A stretch of DNA of 64,000 nucleotides, taken from positions 174,985 to 238,984 of the IMG/VR virus record IMGVR_UViG_3300042922_001182. One strand, 5' to 3'. Below, piece after piece: positions 6,759 through 61,302 of this stretch. How positions within the stretch are numbered: position 1 is the first letter of the stretch; each line of letters begins with the position of its first letter. A program made the position numbers and the translations under genes. The notes beneath the pieces are model-generated. The model worked only from the letters and a program-made list of their open reading frames with translations, searched no databases and had not been told where the DNA came from.

Positions 6759-6789
6759 CGAATCTAAGCCATTTCCGACCGTATATTAT
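6759..6789 (+). promoter_or_regulatory. Bipartite early-type promoter CGAATCT-N16-TATATTAT
   Basis: Exact 16-nt spacer, as in 3 other copies. Confidence 0.75.
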
Positions 6790-6833
6790 TGTTGTGACGT
6801 GATTGGATACTTAGCTATAGGAGGTTATTAATC

Positions 6834-7595
6834 ATGAACAACAACAAGCCTTTCGTCCGTGGTAACTTCGAGCAGGCCACCTGGCTGACCGAGCGGATCA
6901 TGCAGCACATCGTCACCGGCAAGGCGAAGCGCGTGCGGGACTACCTGGAGTTCGCCCGCCGCCAGCTCCAGGTTTCTGAGATCCCGGCGGACAACAAGCT
7001 GAAGGTCAGCAGCCTGAAGGTCATCGGCATCCACGAGGACGTCCTCGAACTCGCCATCGAGCTCCTCAAGTCGGAGGGCTGGAAGGCGGGCAACGTCTCC
7101 CAGGAGGACTTCCTCAATGGTTCCCCCTGGCTCCTCGACGCCAAGATGCAGGAAGATCTCCTGAAGAAGGCGGAGAAGGACGAGGAGAAGAAATCCGAAT
7201 CCATCGGGTCCATCTTCCTCTTCGTCAAGGCCAACCAGGTGGTCCTGGACAAGACCACCATCTACCGCGCCGAGTGCGTCGCGGAGGACATCGTCCTCCA
7301 GAGCAAGATGCGCAGCTGCATCGGACTGACCGTCGAGGAGATCGAGGACCGAGGCGGCTTCCTCGCGGAGGCCATGCACGACCTCCAGGGCAAGATGCTC
7401 ACGAAGACCTTCAACTTCCTGAAGAGCTTCGACGACAACGAGCTCAGCACCGCCCAGCGGGACAAGCTCTTGGGCATCATCCTGGGGAACACCGTCGCTC
7501 ACCTCGACGCGATCATCCCCGGCTGCGGGGAGGCCTTCGAGGCGTCCTCCAGCGCCAAGGTCCAGGCCCTGGTCAAGACCGGTTCCAAGCGCTAA
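6834..7595 (+). CDS. Hypothetical early protein
   Basis: 253 aa; SD AGGAGG; bipartite early promoter at 6759-6789. Confidence 0.8.
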   Translation: MNNNKPFVRGNFEQATWLTERIMQHIVTGKAKRVRDYLEFARRQLQVSEIPADNKLKVSSLKVIGIHEDVLELAIELLKSEGWKAGNVSQEDFLNGSPWLLDAKMQEDLLKKAEKDEEKKSESIGSIFLFVKANQVVLDKTTIYRAECVAEDIVLQSKMRSCIGLTVEEIEDRGGFLAEAMHDLQGKMLTKTFNFLKSFDDNELSTAQRDKLLGIILGNTVAHLDAIIPGCGEAFEASSSAKVQALVKTGSKR

Positions 7596-7633
7596 GAAGA
7601 AGGGGAAGCCAGGCGGCTTCCCCTTCTTTTTTT
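7596..7633. terminator. Bidirectional terminator
   Basis: AGAAGGGGAAGCC/GGCTTCCCCTTCT plus T-run. Confidence 0.75.
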
Positions 7634-8396
7634 AGCCCTCGGAGTCCTTCAACCGGACCAGGTAGGCCATGAACGAGTCGTAGTCCTTGTCGACGATCTT
7701 GAAGTACCTGATTCCGAGCCTCTTCACCTCGGCCTCCTTGGCGATCTCCTTGACCCGTTCTCGCTCCCTGTAGTCGTGGGTGTTGGCGATAGATGGGTCC
7801 ACGCCGTCTGCAACGGAGGAACCCTTCACCTCCACGATGAGGTCGTAGCTGGTGAGGTAGAAATCGGGGATGTAGACCCGCTTGACGCCTCCCTCCTCGT
7901 AGACGATGGTCTGCGGGGCGGGGGAGATCACGTCGCTGGGGTTCCACTCAAGGACGACGTCCATGAACTCAAGGAAGTCCCTCTCGTAGGAGCCGGTGTA
8001 GGTGGAGCTGGTGCCGTCCCTCCACTCGTAGGTGCCCGAGATGCCACGGTTGGCGAGCATCTTGCGCTGCTGCTCGGGGTCGTCCAGAAGGTGCTCCTTC
8101 CCGAACTTCTTGACCATCCGCTCCCTGAACTGGCTGCGGTACTTCTCCCGGCAGGAGGTCTCCGGACGGGAGCACAGGCGCTCGTAGCGGCCCGCCTTCT
8201 CGTTGAACGGGACGGACTTGCGGCACATGATGCAGCTACCCCTACGGCCGCCGTTCCTGGAGTCGAAGAGGGCCTGGAGGGGGCTGACGCCGCCGATGGC
8301 CTTGAGCCCGTCCGAGTGCTCCCGCTCGATGTGCTCGCATAGGAGCTTCTCGTCCTTGCCCGTCCTGTCGCAGAACGGGCACTTCTGCTTCCTCAT
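7632..8396 (-). CDS. Zn-finger plus TnsA-like PD-(D/E)xK endonuclease
   Basis: CPFC..HIEREH, CIMC, and YIPDFYLTSYDLIVEVKG nuclease motif. Confidence 0.65.
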   Translation of the reverse strand: MRKQKCPFCDRTGKDEKLLCEHIEREHSDGLKAIGGVSPLQALFDSRNGGRRGSCIMCRKSVPFNEKAGRYERLCSRPETSCREKYRSQFRERMVKKFGKEHLLDDPEQQRKMLANRGISGTYEWRDGTSSTYTGSYERDFLEFMDVVLEWNPSDVISPAPQTIVYEEGGVKRVYIPDFYLTSYDLIVEVKGSSVADGVDPSIANTHDYRERERVKEIAKEAEVKRLGIRYFKIVDKDYDSFMAYLVRLKDSEG

Positions 8397-8422
8397 ATCG
8401 TCCTCCTGTTCTTTCCTGGCTA

Positions 8423-8434
8423 TAATATGGTGTT
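8423..8434 (-). promoter_or_regulatory. Late-type promoter overlapping an early-type CATATTAT
   Basis: AACAccatatTA; CATATTAT at 8422-8429 on the same strand. Confidence 0.6.
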
Positions 8435-8455
8435 TCCACCAGAAGGGCGAAGGCC

Positions 8456-8467
8456 AACAAAACCATA
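8456..8467 (+). promoter_or_regulatory. Late-type promoter AACA-N6-TA
   Basis: AACAaaaccaTA. Confidence 0.7.
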
Positions 8468-8497
8468 ACTTCGCAGAGCCAACAGGAGGAAAGACGG

Positions 8498-8926
8498 ATG
8501 GCAGACGAAATCGTGCCCGAGTACCAGAAGGAGGAGTTCTTCCTCCAGGTGGGCGACTTCAAGAAGGCCAACTCGGTGACCAAGAACCTAGCCCTCGCGA
8601 GGGTGCTGCAGACCCTCATCATCCTGATGCCGGGCACCTACCCCAACGCCCCCGACATGGGCGTCGGGATCGAGCAGTACCTCTTCGAGTTCCTGGACGG
8701 CGTGACCATCCAGCAGCTCACCCAGAGGCTGCGGGACCAGATCGACACCTACATCCCCAACAACGACATCAACGGGATCGAGATCCAACCGATCAAGGGC
8801 CCCGACGGCAAGACCAACACCCTGGGAATGATCTTCACGCTGGGGAATTCGGAACAGGTGGCCTTGGCCTTCGACCTGGCCGCATCCCGCAAGACCAAGG
8901 TGGTCTCCCGCGTCGTCCTCGCCTGA
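8498..8926 (+). CDS. Baseplate wedge protein, gp25/GPW-like
   Basis: LILMPGTYPNAPDMGVGIEQYLFE motif; 142 aa; late promoter at 8456-8467. Confidence 0.65.
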   Translation: MADEIVPEYQKEEFFLQVGDFKKANSVTKNLALARVLQTLIILMPGTYPNAPDMGVGIEQYLFEFLDGVTIQQLTQRLRDQIDTYIPNNDINGIEIQPIKGPDGKTNTLGMIFTLGNSEQVALAFDLAASRKTKVVSRVVLA

Positions 8927-9026
8927 CGAGTTTTAAAGAAAAAGGCATGGGGCCAACAACAGCAGTAGGGCCGCCCTGGGCCTGACCCACCGTGGCACAA
9001 CACCACAGGAAAGGATTCGAGGAAGT

Positions 9027-10550
9027 ATGGAAAGCTTCGACAACACCAACCCCCAGGCCGGGGCGGACTCCACCCCGGCCGGAACCCCCATGTACGGTAG
9101 CGATCAGGCTGAGCCTCCTTTCGCCCGTCCCAAGGCCAGCGAGCCCCAGCAGGCTCCGGCCTACGACCCTCCGTTCGAGAGGAACGCCGGTGTCCCGCTT
9201 CCCGGAGCCACCCCTCTGAAGCAGCTCGTGGAGAAGCAGCAGAGCGTGGCTCCCGTCCAGGGCTACGTCGTCGACATCGACAACGCCCCGGAGGAGACCC
9301 CCGAGGAGATCATGGGAACCGTCTCCGGCTACCTGGAGGCCTACGACAACCTCTTGGGAGAGACCCCGACCAAGAGCCAGGAGCCTTCTGCCCCGGCGGT
9401 CGAGCGGGAGCCCGTCGTCCACGCTCCGACGACCCCTCCCCCTGTGGTCGAGCAGAAGAAGGACGAGATGTGGTCGGAGCCGGTCTCGCCTCCCCCTGTC
9501 CACAACCCGCCCCCGGATCAGCAGCCCGTCCTGGCCATCCAGCTCACCGAGGACGAGCGGCAGGAGCGAGAGAACGGCAAGATCACGACGCGCAACGTCT
9601 TCGACGGTCTGAACGTCTCGATCGACGTCAACAAGATCGTCCTCTCCGAGTCGAACAAGCTGGTCCAGATGACCTCCATGGAGTCGGTGTTCAACGCCGT
9701 GCCCACCATGAAGGTGATCCTCACCCAGTCCGGCTGGTGGGGTGAGATGTCGGCCCTCAGCATGGCGGAGATCAACTCCATCAACCTGTCGACGAACGAC
9801 CCCTACACGGACACCCGCCGCCAGTACCAGATCCTGCACAAGCACATCGAGTCCAGCAACCTGGGCAAGATCGGCTTCAACGACTTCCTGAAGGCCACCG
9901 CCTTCTACGACGTCGACAGCTTGTACTACGGCTGCTACTGCATGACGTTCCCCGGCGAGAACGAGTTCGAGATCACCTGCCCGTCGTGCCAGAAGAAGAC
10001 CGTCGCGATCATCACCAACAACAGCCTCTTCAAGCGCCCGTCGGCGGAGACGATCGCCAAGGTGAAGCAACTGCGCAACACGGTCGCCACCCCGCAGGAG
10101 CTGGTCGCCGCGTCGCTGCTCTCGGAGACGCACCGCGTCGCCCTGCCGGACAGCAAGATGGTCGTCGAGCTGCGTTCGCCCACGCTGGAGGACTACCTGG
10201 AAAACCTGAACGGCATCACCCCCGAGCAGGCCGACAAGTACGCCAGCGCCGTCGGCATCCGGGCCTTCGTCAGCCGCCTGTTCATGCTGGACATCCCCGC
10301 CACCAAGCGGGCCAACGAGCCCAGGTTCTTCGAGGTCCACGGCGACGTGCTGTTCGAGGCCCTGTGCCGCCTGAGCAAGGTCGACGGCAAGACCGTCAGC
10401 ACGGCCATCGAGGGGGACGTCAAGCGGTACATCATCGGCTACTCTCTGAAGCCGTTCCCCTGCCGCAACTGCAACGACACCATCCCGGAGATGCCCGTCA
10501 ACATGGAGCGCGTGCTTTTCACCCAGATCGCGAAGGAGGTGAGGTCCTAA
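9027..10550 (+). CDS. Baseplate/tail assembly protein (T4 gp26-like) with Pro/Glu-rich N-terminus
   Basis: CPSC and CRNC Zn pairs, LRSPTLED motif, follows the gp25-like gene. Confidence 0.5.
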   Translation: MESFDNTNPQAGADSTPAGTPMYGSDQAEPPFARPKASEPQQAPAYDPPFERNAGVPLPGATPLKQLVEKQQSVAPVQGYVVDIDNAPEETPEEIMGTVSGYLEAYDNLLGETPTKSQEPSAPAVEREPVVHAPTTPPPVVEQKKDEMWSEPVSPPPVHNPPPDQQPVLAIQLTEDERQERENGKITTRNVFDGLNVSIDVNKIVLSESNKLVQMTSMESVFNAVPTMKVILTQSGWWGEMSALSMAEINSINLSTNDPYTDTRRQYQILHKHIESSNLGKIGFNDFLKATAFYDVDSLYYGCYCMTFPGENEFEITCPSCQKKTVAIITNNSLFKRPSAETIAKVKQLRNTVATPQELVAASLLSETHRVALPDSKMVVELRSPTLEDYLENLNGITPEQADKYASAVGIRAFVSRLFMLDIPATKRANEPRFFEVHGDVLFEALCRLSKVDGKTVSTAIEGDVKRYIIGYSLKPFPCRNCNDTIPEMPVNMERVLFTQIAKEVRS

Positions 10551-11538: not shown

Positions 11539-11627
11539 GGGCGAAAGACCTCCGCTGCAAGGCCAATGCGCCTTGCAGCGGAATGGTTCTCCACACTATA
11601 CCAAGACAGGAAAGAGGAAAGACAACC

Positions 11628-13382
11628 ATGTCCCAGAAAAAGAAGACCGACGTGGACAGGAAGATGCCGTTGGAGGAGACCTTTATCACCTCGAACGTCG
11701 TGACCGAGGCCGACACCCGTCGGCAGATCGGGGACACCCTGACCTTCGTCTCCAAGGCGCTCGCCAAGACGCTCGGCCCCTACGGCTCGACCACCATCGT
11801 CCACGATCGCGAGGCCATGGCCCACTTCATGACGAAGGACGGCTACAAGGTGCTCAACTCCATCCAGATCATGGAGGAGGTCCCGCGCACGGTTCTGAAC
11901 ATCATCACCCGCGTCAGCCGGACCCTGGTCCGCACGGTGGGCGACGGATCGACGTCCTCGATCGTGGTTTCCAACAACCTCTACCACCGGATCGCCAAGC
12001 TCCTCCAGAAGTACTCCATCGCCCCCAAGGACATGGTGGACGCGCTCACCCTCGCCTCCCAGATGCTCGCCGACCTGATCGACAAGAAGGCGTACCAGAT
12101 CCCCGACCTCGACACCGAGGAGGGGCTGGAGCTGGTCGCGTGCGTTGCCGCCGTGTCCACCAACAACGACCTGGCGTCGGGCGACCTCGTCGCCAAGATC
12201 TTCCAGGAGATCGGCCGACACGGCTTCGTCACCATCGACGACAACTTCTCCGAGACCGACGAGTACAAGATCACGAACGGCCTGGAGCACAACCGGGGCT
12301 GGATCGACTCTGTCTTCATCAACGACCACAACCGCAGGTCGGTAGAGTTCGAGAACGCATTCGTCCTCCTGGTGGACGACTTCATGACGCAGAACGACCT
12401 CCAGGTGCTGGCTGAGATGATGACAGAGATCGTTGTCAATAACCGCTCTCCCATGGTCATCGTGGCACGCGGCTTCGACGATGCCACGACCAAGTTCTTC
12501 CGGGACAACAAGGTGAGCAGCCCCACGCTCCCCATCTGCGTGGTGGACATCGCCATGTCGAGCAAGGACCACCTGGAGCGCTTCGAGGACATCGCGGCCT
12601 TCATCGGCGGGCGACCCCTCCGCAAGAGCCAGGGCGAGAAGCTGAGCGAAATCAGCCCTGAGGAGCTCGGCATCGTGAAGGCCTTCAGCAGCGACGAGCT
12701 GAAGACGCGCTTCGTCGGCGGTCGGGGCGTCGCCACGGCGAAGCTGAACGAACGCGTGGAAAAGCTCAAGGAGAAGATCCAGGAGCTCTCCGGCGTCAGC
12801 GACCGGGTCAACCGGGACGCCGAGATCCGACTGGTGGAGAAGCGCATCGCCGCGCTGACCTCCGGGATGGCCGTCCTCCGGGTCGGCGGCGCGACGGACT
12901 CCGAGCGGAGCGCCCGCAAGGACCTGTTCGAGGATGCCGTCTACGCCGTCCAGAGCGCCCTGCGCCACGGCATCGTCATGGGCGGCACCCTGGCGGTCCC
13001 GCACATCATCGCCTCCACCCCTACCATCTACGGCGACTTCGCCAACCTGGTGAGGGAGCGCGAGATGCTGCCCACCGTCGAGAAGCTGAACGACTTCAGC
13101 AAGGACTTCCTGGAGTGCATCCTGAAGTCGTTCAAGATGTCGTTCCGCCAGGTGCTGCTCAACTCCGGCATGAAGGAGAACGTCGCCGATGACAACGTGA
13201 ACCGCTGCGTCACCGGGGGCGTAATCTACAACCTCAGCACCCGGGAGTTCGAGCCGTGGGAGGAGACCTCGATCGTGAACTCGGCGGACACGGAGAAGGA
13301 GATCATGAAAGCGGCCTTCTCCATCATCTCGCTCCTCGCAACGTCGAACCAATTCCTTGCCTCCCGGCCGGGGACGCTCTAA
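11628..13382 (+). CDS. groEL: Phage GroEL-like chaperonin
   Basis: KTLGPYG, TKDG, VGDGSTSS and RKDLFEDAVYAVQSALRHGIVMGG motifs; SD before ATG 11628. Confidence 0.9.
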   Translation: MSQKKKTDVDRKMPLEETFITSNVVTEADTRRQIGDTLTFVSKALAKTLGPYGSTTIVHDREAMAHFMTKDGYKVLNSIQIMEEVPRTVLNIITRVSRTLVRTVGDGSTSSIVVSNNLYHRIAKLLQKYSIAPKDMVDALTLASQMLADLIDKKAYQIPDLDTEEGLELVACVAAVSTNNDLASGDLVAKIFQEIGRHGFVTIDDNFSETDEYKITNGLEHNRGWIDSVFINDHNRRSVEFENAFVLLVDDFMTQNDLQVLAEMMTEIVVNNRSPMVIVARGFDDATTKFFRDNKVSSPTLPICVVDIAMSSKDHLERFEDIAAFIGGRPLRKSQGEKLSEISPEELGIVKAFSSDELKTRFVGGRGVATAKLNERVEKLKEKIQELSGVSDRVNRDAEIRLVEKRIAALTSGMAVLRVGGATDSERSARKDLFEDAVYAVQSALRHGIVMGGTLAVPHIIASTPTIYGDFANLVREREMLPTVEKLNDFSKDFLECILKSFKMSFRQVLLNSGMKENVADDNVNRCVTGGVIYNLSTREFEPWEETSIVNSADTEKEIMKAAFSIISLLATSNQFLASRPGTL

Positions 13383-13540
13383 CCTCCGCTTCTCGGGGCC
13401 TCAATGCGAGGCCCTGCGGCAATTTGCGGGAAAAGCGTGCTTTTTTGTTCGGGTCGGGGTATAATGCGGGGGCCGGGGTGTGAGGTAGAGCCTGCTACCC
13501 TCCCCGGCACCCGCCTCGGGGCAATCCCCCGCATCGACTG

Positions 13541-13548
13541 TATATTAT
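13541..13548 (+). promoter_or_regulatory. Early-type motif TATATTAT
   Basis: Intergenic, upstream of 13616. Confidence 0.6.
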
Positions 13549-13615
13549 ACCCTCGATGCGTAACACCGCAAACCCTGGCGGGCAGAACGCACATTCCACA
13601 GGAAGGACAACCGTA

Positions 13616-14446
13616 ATGGCAAGCGAAAGACGGATCTACACCCCGAACGATGAGGTTTGGGATATGACCATTGGTCAGCTCCTGCAGAACCCCACCGGCT
13701 GGGGCTCGGCCGCCGTCGGGAACCGCGAGCGGATCAAGAAGGACCTGGCCGACAGGTTCCAGGTGCTGATGGTGAAGGCCAAGGGCGAGATCGTCCACCA
13801 GGTCTACACCGACGGCGACGACTTCGTGGTTCACCTGCGCGTTCCTTCGGAGACCATCGAGGGTCTCAAGTACGACGTGGTCCTGCGCCTCCACCCCGAG
13901 ACGGCCGACCAAGCCCTATCGGACTACCGGATGACGCTGTTCTCCAACAGCCCTCACTTCGTCTTCACGTACGCGTACGTGCTGAACCAGAAGGGCTCAT
14001 TGGAGGAGACGGTCAAGGGCAAGATGTCCAGCAAGGCGCTGGACGAGGAGCCCAAGATCAGGAACCCGATCGAGACCTGGGGCTTCGAGAAGAGCACGTA
14101 CTTCGCCTGCCTGTACCTCCGGCACTCCATGCGCACCCGCTCTAGGAATGCCATGGCCAAGGACTCCCTCAAGCTCAACCGGAAGCTGCTCCTGGCGAAC
14201 GTCAAAACGTCGGAGGCGAAGATGGTCGAGTACAAGCAGAAGGAGAAGGAGGCCAAGGAGGCCCGGAAGTCCAAGAAGGCGGCTGCGGCCGGTCGTAATG
14301 CCACCAGGGGGCTGGGGCAGGAGGCCGGGGCAGAGGGCCGCGTCGGGAAGGTCAGGGAGGCCCCCGGCGCTGCTGGTCGTCAGGTCAAACAGTCCAAGTC
14401 GGTCGGTAAGACCGGACGGACCCAGCGCAAGCGCCCTACCCGCTAG
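13616..14446 (+). CDS. Hypothetical protein with basic C-terminal tail
   Basis: SD before ATG 13616; early motif TATATTAT at 13541-13548. Confidence 0.75.
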   Translation: MASERRIYTPNDEVWDMTIGQLLQNPTGWGSAAVGNRERIKKDLADRFQVLMVKAKGEIVHQVYTDGDDFVVHLRVPSETIEGLKYDVVLRLHPETADQALSDYRMTLFSNSPHFVFTYAYVLNQKGSLEETVKGKMSSKALDEEPKIRNPIETWGFEKSTYFACLYLRHSMRTRSRNAMAKDSLKLNRKLLLANVKTSEAKMVEYKQKEKEAKEARKSKKAAAAGRNATRGLGQEAGAEGRVGKVREAPGAAGRQVKQSKSVGKTGRTQRKRPTR

Positions 14447-14486
14447 TATTCCCCCTCAACCCCCAGAAGGGAAGGAACATCATCAC

Positions 14487-15938
14487 TTGCAAGAGACCGT
14501 AGAAATCAGAGAATCCGGGAAGATCATCGCGATCGACTTCTCCACCCCGTTCAAGCACGACCTTGAGCACCTTCACGAGTTCAGCCTCGCTCCGAAGCGC
14601 AACTTTGCCAACATCGCCGACTCCATCAAGGAGATCCTCGGCTATGTTATCGGGCGCAGCGAATCCGTGTTGTACGGCTTCCTCCACTTGCAGAACCGTC
14701 TGCAGGACGAGGACGTCATCCTCTCGGAGGAGGAGGTCGCGGACCTGGTGATGTCGGAAATCGTCAACGACGACGCCCGAGCCATCATCGACGAGCACAT
14801 CGAGTCCACCTACTCGGTGAACCTGGACGAGATGACCAAGACGACCAAGAAGGTCAACGAGGAGCTCCAGTTCACCGACATGCACGCCCGCATCATCCTG
14901 AAGGCGAGCATGGCGATGCGCCTGTCCATCCCGGCGCTCACCCAGTATCTACACGTCTACCAACTCGGCAAGTCCGAGAACCTGTTCTTCAACGTCTTCA
15001 GCCGGATCATGGACGCCTTCACGCCGGAGGGTTACGACGCCAAGGCCAAGATCATGAAGCTGACCGGGTCGATCCTGTCGTCCACCCGGTACAGCGACAA
15101 GGTGCTGTGGGCGTACCTGAAGAACATGGCGCTCGACATCCAGACGCTCCACCGGGAGTTCTTCAAGAAGCTGCTCGTCAATGTGCTCCCCAAGCTCAAG
15201 GTCGATCAGAACGTCGTCCCCTACCTCCACGTCACGATCAAGAACCAGATCGACTTCCTGTTCCGCTCCAAGTTCGCCGTCTCCTACAAGTCGGTGAACA
15301 TGATGGAGTCGGACTCGGAGGGCCTGACGGAATTCGACAAGTTCGAGTCCCAGATGGCGATGGTGGACGAGGGCATGTCGGTCATCTCGAAGGACTCCAT
15401 CTCGGAGGAGATCGAGAACACCGCCCGCGCTATCGGAACCACGCTCACGGTCCAGGAGCTGGAGTACTTCCGGGAGCGCATCGTCATCAACAAGACGCAG
15501 ACCAACCTCGTGTTCACCTTCTTCAGCAAGTTCGTGGGCGATTACTTCGACCTGTACAACTGCTCGAAGGACGAGTACGTGGCGCTCTGCGTGCTGACCC
15601 GCAAGTGGCTCCAGAAGAACGGCTACCGCTACCTGTGGCAGTACGTCACCGGTATCCCGGACGAGCTCCGGGAGCGGAAGACGATCAACAAGAAGGAGTT
15701 CATGGACCGACTGCTGTCGTCGCGCCAGTACAAGTCGCTCTTCGACCAGCAGTACAAGCACACGGTCAGCAACATCGTCGACAGCGGCGTCATCCTCAAG
15801 ACGATCGCCACCCTGAAGGCGAACAAGTTCTACAACATCCCGGACATGGAGGAGGGCTCGGACGTCATGGCCGAGATCGATCCCAAGATCGAGGACCTCA
15901 GCGCGGAGTTCTTGAACTTCGTGGCTGCGGCGGTCTAG
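14487..15938 (+). CDS. Candidate non-virion RNAP promoter-specificity (sigma-like) subunit
   Basis: About 483 aa, alpha-helical; TTG start after SD; two genes from the chaperonin as with AR9 gp228/gp226. Synteny inference only. Confidence 0.4.
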   Translation: MQETVEIRESGKIIAIDFSTPFKHDLEHLHEFSLAPKRNFANIADSIKEILGYVIGRSESVLYGFLHLQNRLQDEDVILSEEEVADLVMSEIVNDDARAIIDEHIESTYSVNLDEMTKTTKKVNEELQFTDMHARIILKASMAMRLSIPALTQYLHVYQLGKSENLFFNVFSRIMDAFTPEGYDAKAKIMKLTGSILSSTRYSDKVLWAYLKNMALDIQTLHREFFKKLLVNVLPKLKVDQNVVPYLHVTIKNQIDFLFRSKFAVSYKSVNMMESDSEGLTEFDKFESQMAMVDEGMSVISKDSISEEIENTARAIGTTLTVQELEYFRERIVINKTQTNLVFTFFSKFVGDYFDLYNCSKDEYVALCVLTRKWLQKNGYRYLWQYVTGIPDELRERKTINKKEFMDRLLSSRQYKSLFDQQYKHTVSNIVDSGVILKTIATLKANKFYNIPDMEEGSDVMAEIDPKIEDLSAEFLNFVAAAV

Positions 15939-21725: not shown

Positions 21726-21769
21726 GGGGAGGGGTTTAGCGCGGTAGGCGGGATGCTCCTTCCGGAAAC

Positions 21770-21800
21770 CGAATCTAGGCAAAACCCGAACGCATATTAT
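21770..21800 (+). promoter_or_regulatory. Bipartite early-type promoter CGAATCT-N16-CATATTAT
   Basis: Exact 16-nt spacer. Confidence 0.75.
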
Positions 21801-21866
21801 TACTGTGACATGATAAGGCATTGGAGACGATGCCTGCCTTATAGCTCTTGAAAGGAGCCCAACACC

Positions 21867-22232
21867 ATGACCACCACCAACATCACCGCCGCCGCCGAGC
21901 TCTCGATCGAGCAGCTGGAAGCCCTCCTCGCCAAGAAGAAGGCTGTGGAGAGCGAGCAGAAGGCCATCGAGGGCGGTGCCAAGACCTACGCCATCTGGCT
22001 CACCACGCTCGGCGACAACGTCAAGTTCGGCCAGATCGTCAAGCTCGTGAAGATGATCGGCGACGAGCCCTTCATGAGCATGATGCACAGCTTCGAGAAT
22101 ACCACCGCCCTGAAGACCTTCGTCAAGGTCCTGGCCTGCTCGACCGCCCGCCCCGGCAACGCGGACGACTGCATCATCCTGGGCGGTCGCTACGCCGTGG
22201 AGGCCCTGGCCAAGGAGAACGGCTGGATGTAA
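21867..22232 (+). CDS. Hypothetical early protein
   Basis: SD AAAGGAG; bipartite early promoter upstream; terminator downstream. Confidence 0.8.
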   Translation: MTTTNITAAAELSIEQLEALLAKKKAVESEQKAIEGGAKTYAIWLTTLGDNVKFGQIVKLVKMIGDEPFMSMMHSFENTTALKTFVKVLACSTARPGNADDCIILGGRYAVEALAKENGWM

Positions 22233-22235
22233 GAG

Positions 22236-22267
22236 GAACGGGAGCCTTCGGGTTCCCTTTTCTTTTT
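22236..22267 (+). terminator. Intrinsic terminator
   Basis: GGGAGCC TTCG GGTTCCC plus T-tract. Confidence 0.7.
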
Positions 22268-22272
22268 GCCCA

Positions 22273-22280
22273 TATATTAT
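22273..22280 (+). promoter_or_regulatory. Early-type motif TATATTAT
   Basis: Just after a terminator, upstream of 22307. Confidence 0.65.
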
Positions 22281-22306
22281 AACGTGACTAGCGAAAGGAG
22301 TCTTTC

Positions 22307-22963: not shown

Positions 22964-22973
22964 GGGTGGAAAC

Positions 22974-23004
22974 CGAATCTTCTGCAATCGTCTCCATATA
23001 TTAT
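22974..23004 (+). promoter_or_regulatory. Bipartite early-type promoter CGAATCT-N16-TATATTAT
   Basis: Exact 16-nt spacer. Confidence 0.75.
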
Positions 23005-23043
23005 CTACATGACATACACCCCCATTAGATAGGAGATGATAAA

Positions 23044-23361
23044 ATGAAGCAAGAAGGTTGCAAGGATCGCGACTGCGGCGTCGTGTCGGATCTCGGCGTG
23101 TTGACCTGTCAGCGTTGCGCCGCCGTCCGGGACGCGGCCAGCACCCCCGTGGGCCAGCAGAAGGCCAAGGTGGCCCGGCTCAAGTCCTTGGCCGAGTCCA
23201 TGGAGGCCGACTACCACCGGAAGCTCCGTAAGGGGTTCGAGGACGAGATAGCCAAGGCGGAGCTCCTGATGGACAAAGCCCAGGACGAGTACTACGAGGA
23301 GGACATGAAGCTCTCCGAGATGCTCTACGCCGAGGAAGACAATGAGAGGAACGCCGCGTGA
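23044..23361 (+). CDS. Hypothetical early coiled-coil/Zn protein
   Basis: CKDRDC..CQRC then an acidic helix; bipartite early promoter upstream. Confidence 0.7.
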   Translation: MKQEGCKDRDCGVVSDLGVLTCQRCAAVRDAASTPVGQQKAKVARLKSLAESMEADYHRKLRKGFEDEIAKAELLMDKAQDEYYEEDMKLSEMLYAEEDNERNAA

Positions 23362-26341: not shown

Positions 26342-26349
26342 CATATTAT
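26342..26349 (+). promoter_or_regulatory. Early-type motif CATATTAT
   Basis: Upstream of 26386. Confidence 0.65.
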
Positions 26350-26385
26350 GAGGGTGAATCCTATTGAACCAAACCGCAAGGAGGT

Positions 26386-27531
26386 ATGGAGTTGCGCGAT
26401 ACCGATAGCACTAAGAAGAAAGAAATGATCGAGTTCATCTTCAAGGCGATCGTGTCCTACATGGAAAGGCACAGCCTGGCCACCGATAGCTTCGAGAACT
26501 ACGATAAGGATAGAGCCTGCACCGCCGCCTACCAGAGCCACATCGAGGCGATCCTTAGTGGGTTGGGGCTCAACTGGCACGTCGTGTTCGACATTATGTC
26601 ACCCGGTGGGAACATCCTCGCGATGAGCTCCGCGAAAGATGTCCCCACGACGGAGGGTGGTACCATGTACCGTGGTTGCGTGAAGTACCTGACGGATTTC
26701 CTCGGAGGTCTGTACGGCAACGCATCGGGCCACCCCGGCGTCGACTACTTCGCCGCCGATCTGTACGACATGGCCGTTGAGAGCAACACCACGCTCCGGG
26801 TGCCCCACTGGGACGTGGCCACCCCGAAGGAAACCCGGAAGGCTGAGCCGGTGACCTTCGAGGTCAGCGTGCTCCTGTTCAGCAGGGAGAAGCTACGCAT
26901 GTACCAGTCCGAAATCGCCAGGGCCGAAGAGTGCGAGGCCAACCCTAGCACCATCCCCGACGAAGAGTTGCTCGGCATGGCCGTCACCAACTTCGGGGAG
27001 GCGAGGTCACTGGAGATGGGCTACCAGATCCGCACCTGCAGGGTCGTCCATAAAGCCACGGCACTGGAGGAAGGGGAGAAGGAGGCCGACACGAAGCTGC
27101 TGGAGTACTGGCAGCTCGGCACCCACTTCCCCTTCAACCCCACGGAGGCGGACCTCCGTGATCTGGAGGCGACCCGAGAGGTCGTACTGAGGTACATGGT
27201 GGACAACTCCCTGGGCACCGGGGCGTTCAACCAGTCCAATAGCGCCCCGAACGAGGCGTCGGAGGTCATCGACCACTACCGGGCCATCCTCAACAAGCTG
27301 GAGCTCGACACCGACGGCTGGGACGTGCGCTTCACCTCCGGCGAGACCTTCTACGAGCTCACGGCCGAGCGCCAGACCACCGAGTACGGCGGTCTCCTCG
27401 GGTCCCTGACTTGCATGAAGCAGGTGAAGAAGATCGCCCACATCTTCAACGGAACCTACAACAACGTGGACACCGCAGCGAAGTTCCTCGCCCTCGACCT
27501 CGTCGACATGAAGAGACTGTCAGAAAGGTAG
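26386..27531 (+). CDS. Hypothetical early protein
   Basis: 381 aa; SD AAGGAGG; CATATTAT at 26342-26349. Confidence 0.75.
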   Translation: MELRDTDSTKKKEMIEFIFKAIVSYMERHSLATDSFENYDKDRACTAAYQSHIEAILSGLGLNWHVVFDIMSPGGNILAMSSAKDVPTTEGGTMYRGCVKYLTDFLGGLYGNASGHPGVDYFAADLYDMAVESNTTLRVPHWDVATPKETRKAEPVTFEVSVLLFSREKLRMYQSEIARAEECEANPSTIPDEELLGMAVTNFGEARSLEMGYQIRTCRVVHKATALEEGEKEADTKLLEYWQLGTHFPFNPTEADLRDLEATREVVLRYMVDNSLGTGAFNQSNSAPNEASEVIDHYRAILNKLELDTDGWDVRFTSGETFYELTAERQTTEYGGLLGSLTCMKQVKKIAHIFNGTYNNVDTAAKFLALDLVDMKRLSER

Positions 27532-30524: not shown

Positions 30525-30532
30525 CATATTAT
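30525..30532 (+). promoter_or_regulatory. Early-type motif CATATTAT
   Basis: Just after a terminator, upstream of 30568. Confidence 0.65.
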
Positions 30533-30567
30533 AGACGCGAGCCCAACCCAACATAGGAGGTAAGACA

Positions 30568-35036: not shown

Positions 35037-35044
35037 CATATTAT
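35037..35044 (+). promoter_or_regulatory. Early-type motif CATATTAT
   Basis: Upstream of 35102. Confidence 0.6.
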
Positions 35045-35046
35045 AG

Positions 35047-35081
35047 ACCGGCAAGCCTTCGGGCTTGCCGGTTTCCGTTTT
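35047..35081 (+). terminator. Intrinsic terminator or leader hairpin
   Basis: ACCGGCAAGCC TTCG GGCTTGCCGGT plus T-rich tail. Confidence 0.6.
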
Positions 35082-40897: not shown

Positions 40898-41780
40898 CAC
40901 CGACCCCTTCGGCAGGCAGCAGTTCGAGGAGCACGCCCGCGACCACGGCGGCTTCTTCATCGCGGGCCAGGTCTGGGACTGGGGCACCAAGAACGAGCAG
41001 GAGCTGTACAAGCTCCTCGCCGTCATGAAGACGCAACTCGTTCGCCTCTTCTCCCTGGCCCGGGTCAACGACAAGAGCCGTGACCTCACCGAGGCCGCCG
41101 CAGTCCTCTCCTCGTCCCTGGCCCTGGCCTCCAGGCTGTCCAGCAGCGCGGCCATCGAGGCCTTCTGCAAGGACAAGACCGCCGAGGAGATCCTGACCGG
41201 TGGGGTTGGCACCGTCATCAAGCAGACCAAGTTCGAAGGCGCCCACGGCGGCATCGAGATCTACGTCTTCATGCTCCCGGAGTTCGCCGAGTCCCTCGGC
41301 ATGGCCGCCGTGGAGCCCCCGCGCCACGTCGCGGATCAGCTCCCTCCCGGGACCGTGCTCGTCTCGGTCACCGGGCGAGGCGCCCTGGACCACAACCCCC
41401 TCCCTGCTCGGGCCCTGCTGCGGTTCATGAGCTCGGACGTCTACCACACCGTGAGGCCCTTCCTCCTCAAGGCCTCCCAGTCCAAGTCCGCCGTGAAGTC
41501 CCTGCTCCAAGGGGACTTCTTCCAGGCCTTCGAGGAGAAGCTTCGCAACGACACGGAGGCCCTCAGGACGGTCCTCTTCTACAAGGCGGTCGACGCCCTC
41601 GGCGTCGGCGTCGGCGAGGAGTCCAGGGACCCCCTCCTCTCCATCGTCGACACCTCGACCGACGCGGTCGCCCTGGTGACCTGCCAGTGCGTCATGGACC
41701 GCAACGGCATCGAGAAGCTCGTCCCCGTCCCGCTGAGCGTCGTCCGGGAGGCCCTGGACGCCGGTCTGGCTGGCGGCTGA
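40851..41780 (+). CDS. Hypothetical protein, paralog of 39518
   Basis: VSVTGRGALDHNPL and LVTCQCVMDRNG; start uncertain. Confidence 0.75.
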   Translation: MKRKETTTVDPNRKSSTDPFGRQQFEEHARDHGGFFIAGQVWDWGTKNEQELYKLLAVMKTQLVRLFSLARVNDKSRDLTEAAAVLSSSLALASRLSSSAAIEAFCKDKTAEEILTGGVGTVIKQTKFEGAHGGIEIYVFMLPEFAESLGMAAVEPPRHVADQLPPGTVLVSVTGRGALDHNPLPARALLRFMSSDVYHTVRPFLLKASQSKSAVKSLLQGDFFQAFEEKLRNDTEALRTVLFYKAVDALGVGVGEESRDPLLSIVDTSTDAVALVTCQCVMDRNGIEKLVPVPLSVVREALDAGLAGG

Positions 41781-41828
41781 ATCTCAAACACCGCTTGAAG
41801 ACACACATTATCGGGTTGGACTCGATAC

Positions 41829-45817: not shown

Positions 45818-46246
45818 ATGTACATCACCGACCGCAACAGGCACCCCAACCGGATGGTGCTTGAGAACAGCCTGCTGGTCGTCGGCGACATCGACGAGAA
45901 GACGCTGGATGTCGTCATTCGGATACCGGACATCAGGACGAAGATCCAGTTCTCCGTCACCGGTGCGGACGAGATCAAGAAGATGCTCGCCCGCTTCGAG
46001 GTTGGGAAGGTCGTCCTGCTGGAGCACGACATGGGCCAGGAGGAAGGCTACTACGTGACCCTCACGCCCACCTCCGTGAGCCTCGTGGGCAGCACTCTGA
46101 CGGTCGAGGCGACCGCCAAGGAGCACGGCTGCGACGGTCGAGGCGTGTCCTACGGCGACACCCCCGACGAATGGCGGTACTGCGGCAACAGGGATTGCGA
46201 GATCTGTGAAGGAAGGAAATCGGCCGATGACGACTACCCGGATTAG
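45818..46246 (+). CDS. Hypothetical protein with C-terminal Cys cluster
   Basis: CGNRDCEIC; QEEGYYV shared with the next gene. Confidence 0.65.
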   Translation: MYITDRNRHPNRMVLENSLLVVGDIDEKTLDVVIRIPDIRTKIQFSVTGADEIKKMLARFEVGKVVLLEHDMGQEEGYYVTLTPTSVSLVGSTLTVEATAKEHGCDGRGVSYGDTPDEWRYCGNRDCEICEGRKSADDDYPD

Positions 46247-58540: not shown

Positions 58541-58832
58541 CCAGCAGGTGGTGAGCGGGTGGACCTGGACGAGGGACCACCTGGACTGCACCCCGATCAA
58601 GGCCAAGAGGGTCTCCGAGGGGTCTATCGAGGTAGTGGAGGCGGACGAGGCCCTCACCCGGATGGGGAAGGGGAGCATCCGCTCGGCGTCGGTGCTGCTC
58701 GACTCCCCCCTGGCGGTCCTCGCCCGCCTGGAGGAGTGGAAGAGGGAGGAGCTCAAGCGGGCCCAGAGCGCCGTCGGGCGGGCCGAGGCGGACCTCGTCA
58801 CCCTGGAGGCCAGGAGGAAGGACCTCCGCTAG
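58527..58832 (+). CDS. Hypothetical coiled-coil protein
   Basis: 101 aa. Confidence 0.6.
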   Translation: MAESDQQVVSGWTWTRDHLDCTPIKAKRVSEGSIEVVEADEALTRMGKGSIRSASVLLDSPLAVLARLEEWKREELKRAQSAVGRAEADLVTLEARRKDLR

Positions 58833-58859
58833 ACTGTAGAGAAAGGACACAGAAAGACC

Positions 58860-59633
58860 ATGGAGAACGATACCAACGACGGGGTCGTCCGCACCGAGGG
58901 GTGGGGCGAGGCCCTGGAGGAGATCCTGGAGGACAGCGTCAACGAGATCGGCCTGGCCGAGATGCACGACAACTCCCCCGGGGAGCCCAGCGGGCGCTAC
59001 GCCCTGGCCACCCGCTCGGGCCTCTGCGGCTACCTGCTGCACGTCGAGGACTTCAACACCGAGGGGGAGCTGTGGGCCAAGGCCCGCGAGGTGGCCGCCC
59101 ACGGGGTAGGGGAGTGGCTGTCCTACATGCCCTCGAACGCGTGGGACCTGGAGGAGAAGCGCGAGCTGCAGTGGCCCGAGGACGTCCTGCGCTGGCGCGG
59201 CGTCCCCTCCGAGGACGGCGAGTTCTGGCCCGCCGACCTGGACGGCTGGTTCGGCATCATCTCCGCCCTCCACAGCGCCGACTTCGCCCTGGAGCTGGCG
59301 GGCCACGTAGCCGAGGGGCTCTCCGGGCTGGGCGTCCTCCTGGACTGCGTCCGCTCCGGGGACGACGTCAAGATGCGCCTCTCCACCCAGGGGTACTCCC
59401 CGGAGGAGCCCACGGAGTGGCGCACCTTCCAGATCGTGGACCTCGGGGCGGACGGTCGCGTCGACTCCCTGGGCGAGCGGTGGCCCGACGAGGAGGGCCA
59501 GCTCTTCGACGCCGAGCAGGTCCTTGAGGCCCTCCAGCAGCACCTCGCCCTCATCGGGGTGGGGCTGGAGTTCAGCGCCCCCGACAGGGAGGGCGGCCAC
59601 GTCGCCTACCGGTTCACCAAGGAGGAGGCCTAG
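58860..59633 (+). CDS. Hypothetical highly acidic protein
   Basis: 257 aa, D/E-rich. Confidence 0.7.
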   Translation: MENDTNDGVVRTEGWGEALEEILEDSVNEIGLAEMHDNSPGEPSGRYALATRSGLCGYLLHVEDFNTEGELWAKAREVAAHGVGEWLSYMPSNAWDLEEKRELQWPEDVLRWRGVPSEDGEFWPADLDGWFGIISALHSADFALELAGHVAEGLSGLGVLLDCVRSGDDVKMRLSTQGYSPEEPTEWRTFQIVDLGADGRVDSLGERWPDEEGQLFDAEQVLEALQQHLALIGVGLEFSAPDREGGHVAYRFTKEEA

Positions 59634-60080
59634 ATGACCAAGGCCATCCACTGCGTGCCCTACGCCCCCGAGACGGTCTGCGCCGTGGACGAGCAGGTCC
59701 CCCTCTTCGAGGAGCTCCTCACGCTCTTCTTCGGGGTGTCCCTCGACCAGGTAGCGGTCGTCTACGGCTACGACGTCGGGCAGGGCCTGGTCCACGAGCT
59801 CTACGCGGACGACTCCGACGAGTTCATACTGACCGAGGGTGTGGATCCCTTCACCGGCAGGATGAAGGATATCGTCGACTCGCTGGAGTGGAAGTGGACC
59901 GGGTCCTGCACCATCGGCCTCGGGCCCTCCTACAGGATCGCGGGCGTCGCCAACGGCGAGATCACCCTGGGGGTGTACGTCCGCAAGGACAGCCTGGAGC
60001 GCCTGGGGAGGTACTCCGGGGTGGAGATCGTCGAAACGGGGAACGCAGACGACGAGGAGAAGGGAGGGGACAATGCCTAA
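59634..60080 (+). CDS. Hypothetical protein, paralog of 57498
   Basis: VPYA..PSYRIAGVANGE..GVYVRKDSLERL. Confidence 0.7.
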   Translation: MTKAIHCVPYAPETVCAVDEQVPLFEELLTLFFGVSLDQVAVVYGYDVGQGLVHELYADDSDEFILTEGVDPFTGRMKDIVDSLEWKWTGSCTIGLGPSYRIAGVANGEITLGVYVRKDSLERLGRYSGVEIVETGNADDEEKGGDNA

Positions 60081-60300
60081 AGGAGGCAACGTGAAGACGC
60101 TGACGATGTCCTGGAGGATCGTCGACGAGGCCAGGGTCAGGGCCGCCTACGCCAAGCTCATGAGCCTCCAGTGGGACGGGGCGGAGTTCGACTCCGTCGA
60201 GAAGATGGCCGAGGAGCTGGTCACCTTCATGGACGTCTGGGGCAAGAACTTCGGCGAGGTGGACTGGCTCGACCTCGGCATGCAGCGGACGTACGTCTGA
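60073..60300 (+). CDS. Hypothetical protein, paralog of 47030
   Basis: MSWRIVDEARVRAAYAKL. Confidence 0.65.
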   Translation: MPKGGNVKTLTMSWRIVDEARVRAAYAKLMSLQWDGAEFDSVEKMAEELVTFMDVWGKNFGEVDWLDLGMQRTYV

Positions 60301-60311
60301 CGGCGATCGCC

Positions 60312-60351
60312 AAAAAAAAGAAGGGACCTGCGAGGGCCCCTTCTTTTTTTT
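60312..60351. terminator. Bidirectional terminator
   Basis: A8-GAAGGG..CCCTTC-T8. Confidence 0.8.
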
Positions 60352-60364
60352 GCTGCAGAACGAC

Positions 60365-60601
60365 CTACCCCTGCCCCGCGAGGTTCTTGAGGACGACGTT
60401 CTGGTGGTAGTCCGCGCACGGGGCGCACCGGCCGCCGCGCATGGTCTCCAGGGGGACCTCGGAGCTGCACCGGACGCACTCGTTCTCCGGGGGCACGTCG
60501 TACGCCTCCGGGTTGCAGTCCTTGCACTTGCCGTCGACCGTCGACGGGACGTCCTGGCCGCAACCGGTGCAAGACACGTTCTCCCAAAGTGAGTTCTCCA
60601 T
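60365..60601 (-). CDS. Small multi-CxxC Zn-binding protein
   Basis: CTGC, CKDC, CVRC, CAPC. Confidence 0.65.
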   Translation of the reverse strand: MENSLWENVSCTGCGQDVPSTVDGKCKDCNPEAYDVPPENECVRCSSEVPLETMRGGRCAPCADYHQNVVLKNLAGQG

Positions 60602-60634
60602 GGTGATGTCTCCTATCTGCCCTCTAGGGGCTAA

Positions 60635-60985
60635 TTACCAAACCGCCTCGCTAGCCTTGGGCTGACCGGGGTAGAGCGGGGTGCCGTCGAGCTTCACCCA
60701 CCGCCCGTCGGCGTAGTAGGCCCCGACCGTCTTGGTCTCCTCCTCGATGCGCTTGAGGCGCCCCGCGTCGGCCTTGATGGGCTTCCCGTCCTGGGAGACC
60801 CGGGTGGCGGTGTGCCCCACCGCGTACCCGACCGTGACCTCCCCCTGGGGGGTGGCGACCTTGCGGGCCTGGACGTGGTCGAACGCCACGAAGTCCACCG
60901 TCACCCGCCTGCACCCCCGGTGCCCCTCGATCCACAACGGGGCCTTGTAGAAGGTGGGGGCGTCGTTCCTGAGCTGGTCGTTCAT
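60635..60985 (-). CDS. Hypothetical early protein
   Basis: SD AAGGAG; 116 aa. Confidence 0.7.
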   Translation of the reverse strand: MNDQLRNDAPTFYKAPLWIEGHRGCRRVTVDFVAFDHVQARKVATPQGEVTVGYAVGHTATRVSQDGKPIKADAGRLKRIEEETKTVGAYYADGRWVKLDGTPLYPGQPKASEAVW

Positions 60986-61045
60986 GCTCGTTCTCCTTCG
61001 CTAGCTATTGTGGAAAAATAAGAGGCCTGCTAGGGCCTCTTACCT

Positions 61046-61231
61046 CTAGGGGACGACGGTGATGGGGGTGCTCTGCCAGCACTCGGGGCACTTGCCCGAG
61101 GGCTCGGTCGCCATCCCGTGGCGGGCCCCCTCGCCGCCGGTGAGGCGCACCTGGGGGACGCCCACGGTGGAGGTGACGCGGCTGAGGTCGTTGAGGGCGG
61201 CCTGGAGGCCGGGGTTGAACTTGGACTGCAT
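61046..61231 (-). CDS. Small early protein
   Basis: SD AAGGAG; bipartite early promoter at 61272-61302. Confidence 0.6.
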   Translation of the reverse strand: MQSKFNPGLQAALNDLSRVTSTVGVPQVRLTGGEGARHGMATEPSGKCPECWQSTPITVVP

Positions 61232-61271
61232 ATCTCTAATCTCCTTCTACAGACTGTGGGTTATCGTAGGA

Positions 61272-61302
61272 ATAATATGTGTAGACCCCTCCGCTAGATT
61301 CG
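61272..61302 (-). promoter_or_regulatory. Bipartite early-type promoter CGAATCT-N16-CATATTAT
   Basis: Reverse complement, exact 16-nt spacer. Confidence 0.75.

Follow-up and report, generated by a model that had tools for sequence, protein, structure and literature searches.

Early promoters of jumbo phages that package a multisubunit RNA polymerase (RNAP) in the virion have mostly been described as a single AT-rich element at about -10. In Bacillus phages AR9 and PBS1, the mapped virion-RNAP early promoter is AAATATATATTAT-N6-G+1, with the core consensus ATATATTAT at about -15 to -7, and only this -10-region consensus is described (Lavysh et al. 2017, PMC5312081). The early promoters of phiKZ and 201phi2-1 are reported to have an extended -10 box, TATATTAC, together with a T-rich motif upstream of -19 and conserved -20 and -30 regions (PMC8244752, PMC11512511), so that "single element" is a simplification. 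As described, the upstream conservation in phiKZ-type promoters is an AT/T-rich feature of the whole promoter class; phiKZ sequences were not analysed by us. Two further systems are of comparable architecture. Bacterial sigma-70 promoters are bipartite (-35 TTGACA and -10 TATAAT), with a spacing of about 17 bp, and may carry a purely A/T UP element at -40 to -60 that is contacted by the alpha C-terminal domain. In T4 middle promoters, a phage-specific MotA box at -30 replaces the -35 region at a fixed distance from a shared sigma-70 -10 element and sets a temporal class, but T4 uses the host RNAP with the MotA and AsiA proteins and its box marks a later class. How jumbo-phage virion RNAPs recognise promoters is an open question, as these enzymes have no sigma or alpha homologs (PMC5312081, PMC13282480) and no known specificity subunit.

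We analysed a 64,000-nucleotide stretch (hereafter the window) that forms the last 64 kb of a 239-kb, 63.5% GC jumbo phage from a soil metagenome (IMG/VR record IMGVR_UViG_3300042922_001182, positions 174,985 to 238,984). The initial annotation had noted four copies of CGAATCT exactly 16 nucleotides upstream of YATATTAT, and this observation is confirmed. CGAATCT-N16-YATATTAT is located at 6759-6789, 21770-21800 and 22974-23004 on the plus strand and at 61272-61302 on the minus strand, whereas none is expected in 100 shuffles, and these are the only four CGAATCT in the window. YATATTAT occurs 10 times, against 0.08 expected. The five sites listed as lacking the upstream element (13541, 22273, 26342, 30525 and 35037) are present, but a sixth at 8422-8429 on the minus strand had been missed, and two further element-less promoters with an ACATTAT core, at 41805 and 63832, fall outside the pattern used. 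Random spacing of CGAATCT across the genome had been named in advance as grounds for rejecting the observation. Among the 10 CGAATCT in the 238,984-bp genome, 6 lie at the exact spacing from an A[TC]ATTAT core and 4 are intragenic.

The conserved upstream sequence is longer than the heptamer. Eight of about 27 core promoters in the genome carry GAAA(C/G)CGAATCTAG at -42 to -29. In a weight-matrix scan with this 14-nucleotide block, 7 sites score 20.5-23.6, all with a core at the exact offset, an eighth scores 15.5 and has a degenerate core (ATATTCT), and every other site in the genome scores 13.4 or less. An unbiased position-anchored word test finds 7 promoters sharing words at -40 to -30, against a null maximum of 4. 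The blocks are conserved while the 16-nucleotide spacer is not, which points to selection on two separate elements. The subclass also differs from the other promoters downstream of the core, with a pyrimidine at -6 in 8 of 8 against 5 of 19 (P = 0.0006). We also considered whether the element compensates for a weak core. This is not supported, since CAC at -16 to -14 occurs in 4 of 8 against 12 of 19 promoters (counted by eye), which is not a significant difference.

Four of the eight bipartite promoters are in the window. In the first, the upstream element TAAAGCGAATCTAA (6754-6767, plus strand) precedes the core ATATTAT at -13 to -7 and the predicted +1 G (6783-6796, with G at 6796), ahead of an ORFan gene at 6834-7595 (253 aa). 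In the second, GAAACCGAATCTAG (21765-21778, plus) precedes the core and predicted +1 G (21794-21807, G at 21807), ahead of an ORFan gene at 21867-22232 (121 aa). In the third, GAAACCGAATCTTC (22969-22982, plus) precedes the core and predicted +1 G (22998-23011, G at 23011), ahead of an ORFan gene at 23044-23361 (105 aa). In the fourth, on the minus strand, GTAACCGAATCTAG (61294-61307) precedes the core and predicted +1 G (61265-61278, G at 61265), ahead of three small minus-strand genes starting with 61046-61231 (61 aa), and this promoter is divergent from the virion RNAP subunit operon. Single-element early promoters (core plus +1 G) are located on the plus strand at 13542-13555, upstream of the region of the gene for the gp226-like non-virion RNAP subunit; at 22274-22287, directly after an intrinsic terminator (22240-22257 plus a T-run); at 26343-26356; at 30526-30539; and at 35038-35051. 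The remaining ones are at 8415-8428 on the minus strand, and, with an ACATTAT core, at 41805-41818 (plus), where a TGAATCT lies 3 nucleotides too far upstream, and at 63832-63845 (plus), at the end of the contig.

The initial annotation further proposed that these are early promoters read by a virion RNAP, that a -35-like second element or an activator/repressor site defines a stronger or earliest subclass, and that this element had not been described. This interpretation is supported, each claim with qualifications. As to the first claim, the phage encodes split RNAP beta/beta' genes, and its two-RNAP system is closest to that of AR9, rather than being phiKZ-like in the strict sense. The gene at 61680-62912 (plus) is a homolog of the AR9 g264 virion RNAP subunit (about 40% identity), part of the enzyme expected to read these promoters, and the gene at 14148-15938 (plus) is a homolog of AR9 gp226, the promoter-specificity subunit of the non-virion RNAP. 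The core, (C)AC-A[TC]ATTAT, found at 27 sites, is the dominant intergenic word in the genome; ATATTAT is identical to the 3' seven bases of the AR9 consensus. Nearly all sites are intergenic and 30-80 nucleotides before a co-oriented gene, as in AR9, whose sites are also intergenic and upstream of small early genes, and early promoters sit in syntenic places in AR9, where one likewise precedes the gp226 region. A G lies at the AR9 start position, six bases after the core, in 24 of 27 sites; the start geometry is taken from AR9, and as the only sequencing run found to contain this phage is a soil metagenome DNA run, the presence of the G leaves the actual start undecided. Independence from host RNAP and from new protein synthesis was not measured in this uncultured phage, whose host is unknown. 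The promoters differ from those of AR9 in that the part of the core upstream of ATATTAT is CAC rather than AAATAT, in a genome of 63.5% GC against 28%.

We then sought the element in other phages. A matching element, CGWAW with C at -37 or -38, is present in 14-30% of early promoters of AR9, phiR1-37 and Staphylococcus phage S6. It occurs in the soil phage (G000) in 7 of 23 promoters at -37 (P = 3×10−12), in AR9 in 9 of 62 at -38 (P = 4×10−11), in phiR1-37 in 10 of 44 at -37 (P = 5×10−11) and in S6 in 5 of 37 at -37 (P = 6×10−6), and it hardly occurs anywhere else between -70 and -15, although the pattern CGWAW was chosen after seeing the data. About a quarter of AR9's promoters carry a related upstream element, a(a)CCGTAT(T/C)AAAA, with CG at -38/-37. 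In the soil phage the block reads CGAATCT rather than CGTATT and lies 1 nucleotide closer, and the G000 and AR9 elements share only AACCG.AT..A. Another high-GC relative (G001) has the same core geometry but no such element, so the element is dispensable for the enzyme. We found no description of the element in the AR9 transcription paper, the phiR1-37 paper or the 2020 and 2026 reviews, the AR9 genome paper (PMC13189113) not being among the texts examined. In contrast to the phiKZ-type conservation as described, the element is a discrete CG-containing block present in only a subset of promoters.

A comparison of early transcript levels between bipartite and single-element promoters had been suggested beforehand as a test. 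No expression data exist for this phage, but published RNA-seq data allowed the comparison in two cultured relatives. In AR9 (Tables S2 and S4), the 10 element-bearing promoters have a median 5-min/20-min FPKM ratio of 1.16 against 0.21 (P = 3×10−5), and 5 of 10 peak at 5 min against 0 of 28 (P = 5×10−4). The difference holds among pure-early units (1.23 against 0.21, P = 0.002), and the 5-min level is 3.6-fold higher (P = 0.025). The 20-min levels are equal, however, so a simple "stronger promoter" is not the whole story and early shut-off may contribute. All eight "pre-early" genes named by the AR9 authors lie in units headed by element-bearing promoters, including P292, whose upstream region was recovered from PBS1. 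The chloramphenicol test in AR9 used only promoters that lack the element (P087 and P104). The phiR1-37 data (Table S2) agree in direction: early exceeds late in 8 of 8 against 15 of 40 (P = 0.0013), the early-phase level is 10-fold higher (P = 0.02), and none of the eight is in the LATE class, although the kinetic difference shrinks to a trend (P = 0.07) when LATE-class controls are removed. The element is not transcribed, so the association points to transcription rather than RNA stability. Element-bearing promoters are scattered along all the genomes, so the order of DNA entry does not explain the association.

These results could best be explained by a conserved -35-like upstream element, A-rich and then CG(T/A)A(T/A) with C at -37 or -38, that recurs in AR9-like jumbo phages and defines an immediate-early ("pre-early") subclass of virion-RNAP promoters, a reading to which we assign a probability of roughly 0.65. 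In this view, the block is the local version of the element, and promoters carrying it would fire first and hardest after DNA injection and would drive short units of small host-takeover genes that carry no late promoter. What the analysis itself establishes is that the element exists at a fixed spacing and not without the core, that it recurs in three cultured relatives, and that it is associated with the earliest and strongest expression in AR9 and phiR1-37. That it does the same in this phage is inferred, with timing and strength extrapolated from relatives whose RNAP is only about 40% identical and with no mapped start sites, as is the mechanism, in which the virion RNAP or a co-injected specificity factor gains an extra contact near -35 that speeds promoter capture. 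It is about as likely as not that the sigma-less virion RNAPs of AR9-like jumbo phages, or a protein injected with them, read a two-part promoter in which the -37 element is a genuine -35-like recognition determinant that hard-wires an immediate-early gene class. This would be a temporal layer of jumbo-phage transcription that has been observed, as AR9 "pre-early" transcripts, but never explained at the sequence level. Unlike the T4 case, the enzyme would be the phage's own and the class the earliest one, with no activator known. A discrete, position-fixed second element, recurring in phages of Bacillus, Yersinia, Staphylococcus and an unknown high-GC soil host and tracking the earliest transcripts in two independent published data sets, would give a sequence explanation for the "pre-early" class and a simple mutational handle (the -37 CG block and its spacing) for biochemical and structural work on promoter recognition. 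It also helps annotation, since in uncultured relatives the element flags the first genes expressed after injection, which are the likely host-takeover and anti-defence genes.

An alternative, which we consider unlikely but the most likely of the rivals, is that the block is an operator for a phage-encoded regulator made early in infection, and that this subset looks "pre-early" because it is repressed sooner, without any positive contact to the polymerase. Consistent with this, AR9 element-bearing units peak at 5 min and then fall or plateau while other early units rise about 5-fold by 20 min to equal levels, and a site at -42 to -29 overlaps the place where a bound protein would block polymerase. 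A phyletic screen for proteins present in the four element-bearing phages and absent from G001 returned six, most of them baseplate proteins that probably escaped detection in G001. One is a 214-aa protein with an HeH/SAP DNA-binding domain, which is only a weak lead because its AR9 homolog (g163) is a late gene. Moreover, repression alone predicts equal levels at the earliest time point, contrary to the higher 5-min levels in AR9, and in phiR1-37 the element heads the most abundant units at all times (g304, g144 and g330-332). The element is also asymmetric rather than palindromic, and it never occurs away from a core promoter.

It is much less likely that the block is a functionless relic of promoter cassettes duplicated within the genome. 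Some pairs do share bases beyond the block, namely CGAATCTAGCGG at genome positions 3785 and 236262 and AAACCCG in the spacers of 87903 and 196778, and a partial 63-kb relative (G003) has promoters with the same core, of which the three best copies are near-identical duplicated cassettes. However, spacers and flanks have diverged to near-random while the block and its exact distance are kept in 8 of 8 sites, the downstream genes are unrelated to one another, a like element sits at the same position in three distant phages with very different base composition, and it is associated with expression kinetics. Least likely of all are host sigma-factor promoters, with CGAATCT as the -35 element and TATTAT as the -10 element, which would let the phage use host transcription for a few genes, because, although TATTAT matches TATAAT at 5 of 6 positions, the block sits at the classical -35 distance (17-18 bp from the -10 hexamer) and the sigma factors of the unknown host were not examined, the -35 hexamers GAATCT and AATCTA match TTGACA at only 1 of 6 positions, a sigma-70 consensus scan does not call the sites, the core and +1 geometry are identical to those of the element-less promoters and of AR9's virion-RNAP promoters, and the same upstream element is present in AR9 and PBS-type phages, where early transcription does not depend on host RNAP (PMC5312081, PMC13282480). 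The block is not a UP element either, since it lies at -42 to -29 and contains an invariant CG, and jumbo-phage RNAPs lack alpha subunits (PMC13282480).

Megablast and tblastn searches of window pieces against GenBank phages gave no match, and a single-protein locus search in IMG/VR returned nothing; only an alignment-based search reached relatives. The nearest relatives of the RNAP subunit among 5.8 billion proteins are at most 46% identical, and phylogenetic footprinting of orthologous promoters was therefore impossible. A pattern scan of IMG/VR with the bipartite motif was uninformative, as it returned at least 118 loci with one match each, i.e., chance hits in AT-rich contigs. Among the related sequences, two loci of 49% and 44% GC (L119 and L120) and one of 66% GC (L121) are too short to define a promoter motif, and a relative of 37% GC (G005) shows no clear early motif. 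The eight genes downstream of the bipartite promoters have no Pfam or PHROG hit of note. In a k-mer search of intergenic DNA for a late-promoter motif, only the early core and terminator T-runs stand out, as reported for other such phages.

The pattern CGAATCT-N16-YATATTAT occurs four times in the window, at 6759-6789(+), 21770-21800(+), 22974-23004(+) and 61272-61302(-), whereas none is expected in shuffled sequence, and the observation made in the initial annotation is thus confirmed. These are the only CGAATCT sequences in the window, and YATATTAT itself occurs 10 times against 0.08 expected. The five YATATTAT sites listed there as lacking the upstream element are present, but one further site at 8422-8429(-) and two promoters with an ACATTAT core, at 41805 and 63832, had been missed.

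The window is the last 64 kb of a single 238,984-bp contig with 63.5% GC. The only sequencing run in which the contig was found is a soil metagenome DNA run, so that the phage is uncultured, its host is unknown and no RNA data exist. It encodes split RNA polymerase (RNAP) beta/beta' genes. The sequence at window 61680-62912 is about 40% identical to AR9 g264, a virion RNAP (vRNAP) subunit, and that at window 14148-15938 matches AR9 gp226, the specificity subunit of the non-virion RNAP. At window 11583-15938, the gene order GroEL, small gene and gp226-like non-virion RNAP subunit is conserved with AR9 g228-g226, GroEL lies upstream of the gp226 homolog in both phages, and an early promoter lies in the same neighbourhood. 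The closest relatives are the group of AR9/PBS1, Staphylococcus S6, Listeria LPJP1 and Yersinia phiR1-37, and not phiKZ itself. Among 5.8 billion proteins searched, no relative of the RNAP subunit is more than 46% identical, and the lineage is isolated. A 5'-deoxyribonucleotidase-like protein encoded at genome 137991-138689 (minus strand; 992-1690 of locus L157) has homologs in the uracil-DNA phages AR9, phiR1-37 and S6 but was not detected in G001, a high-GC relative, which hints that this phage may also replace thymine with uracil.

The core A[TC]ATTAT occurs at 27 places genome-wide, 24 of them on the plus strand. Only one site (201575) is clearly intragenic, and two others touch the edge of our approximate gene calls, whereas the rest lie in intergenic DNA, mostly 30-80 nt upstream of a co-oriented gene with a Shine-Dalgarno sequence. 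The ACATTAT at window 26591-26597, inside the gene 26386-27531 and without a G at +1, is probably a chance match and not a promoter. The consensus is (C)AC-ATATTAT-N6-G, with the G present in 24 of 27 sites, and this word is the dominant intergenic word in the genome. The experimentally mapped early promoters of AR9, which are read by the virion RNAP, are AAATATATATTAT-N6-G+1 (PMC5312081). Sequence, geometry and position therefore all fit an AR9-type early promoter, including one promoter ahead of the gp226-homolog region and one pointing away from the vRNAP subunit gene toward small genes, as in AR9. With the G taken as +1, ATATTAT occupies -13..-7 and CGAATCT occupies -37..-31.

When the promoters are aligned on +1, eight of them carry a 14-nt block, GAAA(C/G)CGAATCTAG, at -42..-29. 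Their cores are at genome positions 3785, 87903, 127805, 140627, 181767, 196778, 197982 and 236262(-), the last four being the window sites, and the other 19 promoters show no conservation in that region. Random spacing of the upstream sequence across the genome had been named beforehand as evidence that would count against a bipartite promoter. In a weight-matrix scan of the whole genome, seven sites score 20.5-23.6, each with a core at the exact offset, the next score, 15.5, also has a core-like ATATTCT at the offset, and every other site scores 13.4 or less, most of those being intragenic. The block therefore never occurs on its own. An unbiased anchored word test also recovers it, in 7 promoters against a null maximum of 4. 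The 16-nt spacer is not conserved and the downstream genes are unrelated ORFans, and the pattern is therefore one of two selected blocks at a fixed distance, not a recent duplication. At window 41776-41811, TGAATCT lies 20 nt rather than 17 nt before the ACATTAT core at 41805, and may be a mis-spaced or decayed copy of the element. At one bipartite promoter outside the window (genome 3745-3778; locus L154), the CGAATCT block lies in the loop and 3' arm of a perfect 13-bp hairpin, GTAGGCCCGCTAG-AATCGAAT-CTAGCGGGCCTAC, which is probably the terminator of the upstream gene. The subclass also has a pyrimidine at -6 (8/8 against 5/19, P = 0.0006) and tends toward T-1 G+1 A+2 C+3. These promoters head short units of one to three small genes, often as islands inside blocks of opposite-strand genes, and they do not fit a sigma-70 promoter.

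We then examined the relatives. G001 is complete (259 kb, 65.6% GC) and has about 30 promoters of the form CATATCAT-N6-G, with the same geometry and a core that differs by one base, but it has no anchored upstream element. We had not anticipated that a subset of the AR9 early promoters carries a(a)CCGTAT(T/C)AAAA with CG at -38/-37. One unified pattern, CGWAW, was then tested by position in five promoter sets. It is found with C at -37 in 7 of 23 promoters of this phage (binomial P = 3e-12), with C at -38 in 9 of 62 promoters of AR9 (P = 4e-11), with C at -37 in 10 of 44 promoters of phiR1-37 (P = 5e-11) and with C at -37 in 5 of 37 promoters of S6 (P = 6e-6), whereas in G001 it is found in 1 of 31 promoters and not at a fixed position (P = 0.13). 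The pattern hardly occurs anywhere else between -70 and -15. It was chosen after seeing the data, but its positional specificity is overwhelming. The elements of this phage and AR9 share AACCG.AT..A.

A comparison of early transcript levels between promoters with and without the element had likewise been put forward as a test, and it was made with published data on two relatives. The authors of the AR9 study listed eight "pre-early" genes (g048, g109, g111, g120, g169, g235, g289 and g292) and attributed their behaviour to RNA stability or vRNAP affinity, without naming any sequence feature. All eight lie in units headed by element-bearing promoters, namely P048, P108, P120, P169, P234 and P292. 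The upstream region of P292 runs off the end of the AR9 record, and was recovered from PBS1, where it has CCGTATC with CG at -38/-37. Using Tables S2 and S4 of that study and taking the first gene after each promoter, the median 5-min/20-min FPKM ratio is 1.16 for the 10 promoters with the element and 0.21 for the 28 without (P = 3e-5). Expression peaks at 5 min in 5 of 10 against 0 of 28 (P = 5e-4), and the median 5-min FPKM is 304 against 85 (P = 0.025). The classes do not differ at 20 min, where the median FPKM, computed before P292 was added (9 promoters), is 406 against 380 (P = 0.74). Control genes often also have late promoters, but this possible confound does not explain the result, because among pure-early units only the ratio is 1.23 against 0.21 (P = 0.002).

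For phiR1-37 we used Table S2 of PMC4848604, with gene names taken from the annotation of the record, and compared first genes after 8 promoters with the element and 40 other PHIRE promoters. Early expression exceeds late expression in 8 of 8 against 15 of 40 (P = 0.0013), the median early/late ratio is 1.61 against 0.74 (P = 0.0016), the median early-phase level is 15,037 against 1,501 (P = 0.02), and 0 of 8 against 17 of 40 belong to the LATE or MIDDLE class (P = 0.04). When LATE and MIDDLE controls are removed, the kinetic difference is only a trend (P = 0.07). Three of the most abundant transcription units in that table (g304-305, g144 and g330-332) are headed by element-bearing promoters. 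Two element-bearing phiR1-37 promoters, at 163322-163346 (minus strand) and 127520-127544 (plus strand) of AJ972879.2, are marked "unverified" in the published table and precede tiny ORFs (g232 and g188) with almost no reads, and one of them lies just upstream of the vRNAP beta subunit gene g231.

Reviews describe the early promoters of jumbo phages as a highly conserved AT-rich element of about 10 nt at -10 (PMC7598289), and a 2026 review still gives no promoter-specificity determinant for the vRNAP (PMC13282480). Upstream information as such is not unprecedented, since phiKZ and 201phi2-1 early promoters are reported to have a T-rich motif upstream of -19 and conserved -20 and -30 regions (PMC8244752, PMC11512511). 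The initial annotation noted the element as apparently undescribed, and in the papers that we could search we also found none of a discrete CG-containing element that is present in only a subset of promoters and tied to a temporal subclass. The finding is limited mainly by the lack of direct data for this phage and by the post-hoc choice of the cross-phage pattern. 

The element lies upstream of the start site and is not transcribed, and its association with early expression therefore points to transcription rather than RNA stability. Element-bearing promoters are scattered along all four genomes, so that the order of DNA entry does not explain the association. Higher output at the earliest time points favours a positive role, that is, an extra contact near -35 for the virion RNAP or for a co-injected factor. 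The proposal in the initial annotation that a -35-like second element, or an activator or repressor site, defines a stronger or earliest promoter subclass is supported in this respect by AR9 and phiR1-37. The element and its spacing, and the association in these two phages, are shown, whereas the same behaviour in this phage and the extra contact are inferred. The equal 20-min levels in AR9 mean that early shut-off may contribute as well, and an operator for an early repressor remains the main rival explanation. A phyletic screen gave one weak candidate recogniser, a 214-aa protein with a C-terminal HeH/SAP DNA-binding domain (PF12949, 30.8 bits) encoded at genome 150407-151051 (minus strand; 408-1052 of locus L234), which is present in the four phages that have the upstream element and was not detected in G001, but its AR9 homolog, g163, is a late gene. 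A host sigma-factor promoter is unlikely, because the -35 sequence does not match TTGACA, the core is shared with the other vRNAP promoters, and AR9 early transcription is independent of host RNAP (PMC5312081).

Many single-element promoters sit directly after an intrinsic terminator, as at window 22240-22287 and at genome 50933, 97908 and 205510 (window 30526). The T-run of the terminator falls at about -25..-17 of the next promoter, forming compact terminator-promoter modules, an arrangement that the bipartite promoters lack. Two early-promoter leaders, at window 13555-13600 and genome 73580-73625, share the motif AAACCCTGGC inside GC-rich inverted repeats, which may be a conserved 5' leader structure. 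In addition, a 35% GC relative (G003; locus L129) carries three near-identical early-promoter cassettes, TCAAACATATATTATTTAGGT-G plus about 30 nt of leader, at positions 46167, 46721 and 48400 (minus strand), within 2.3 kb, which look like tandem duplicated early units.
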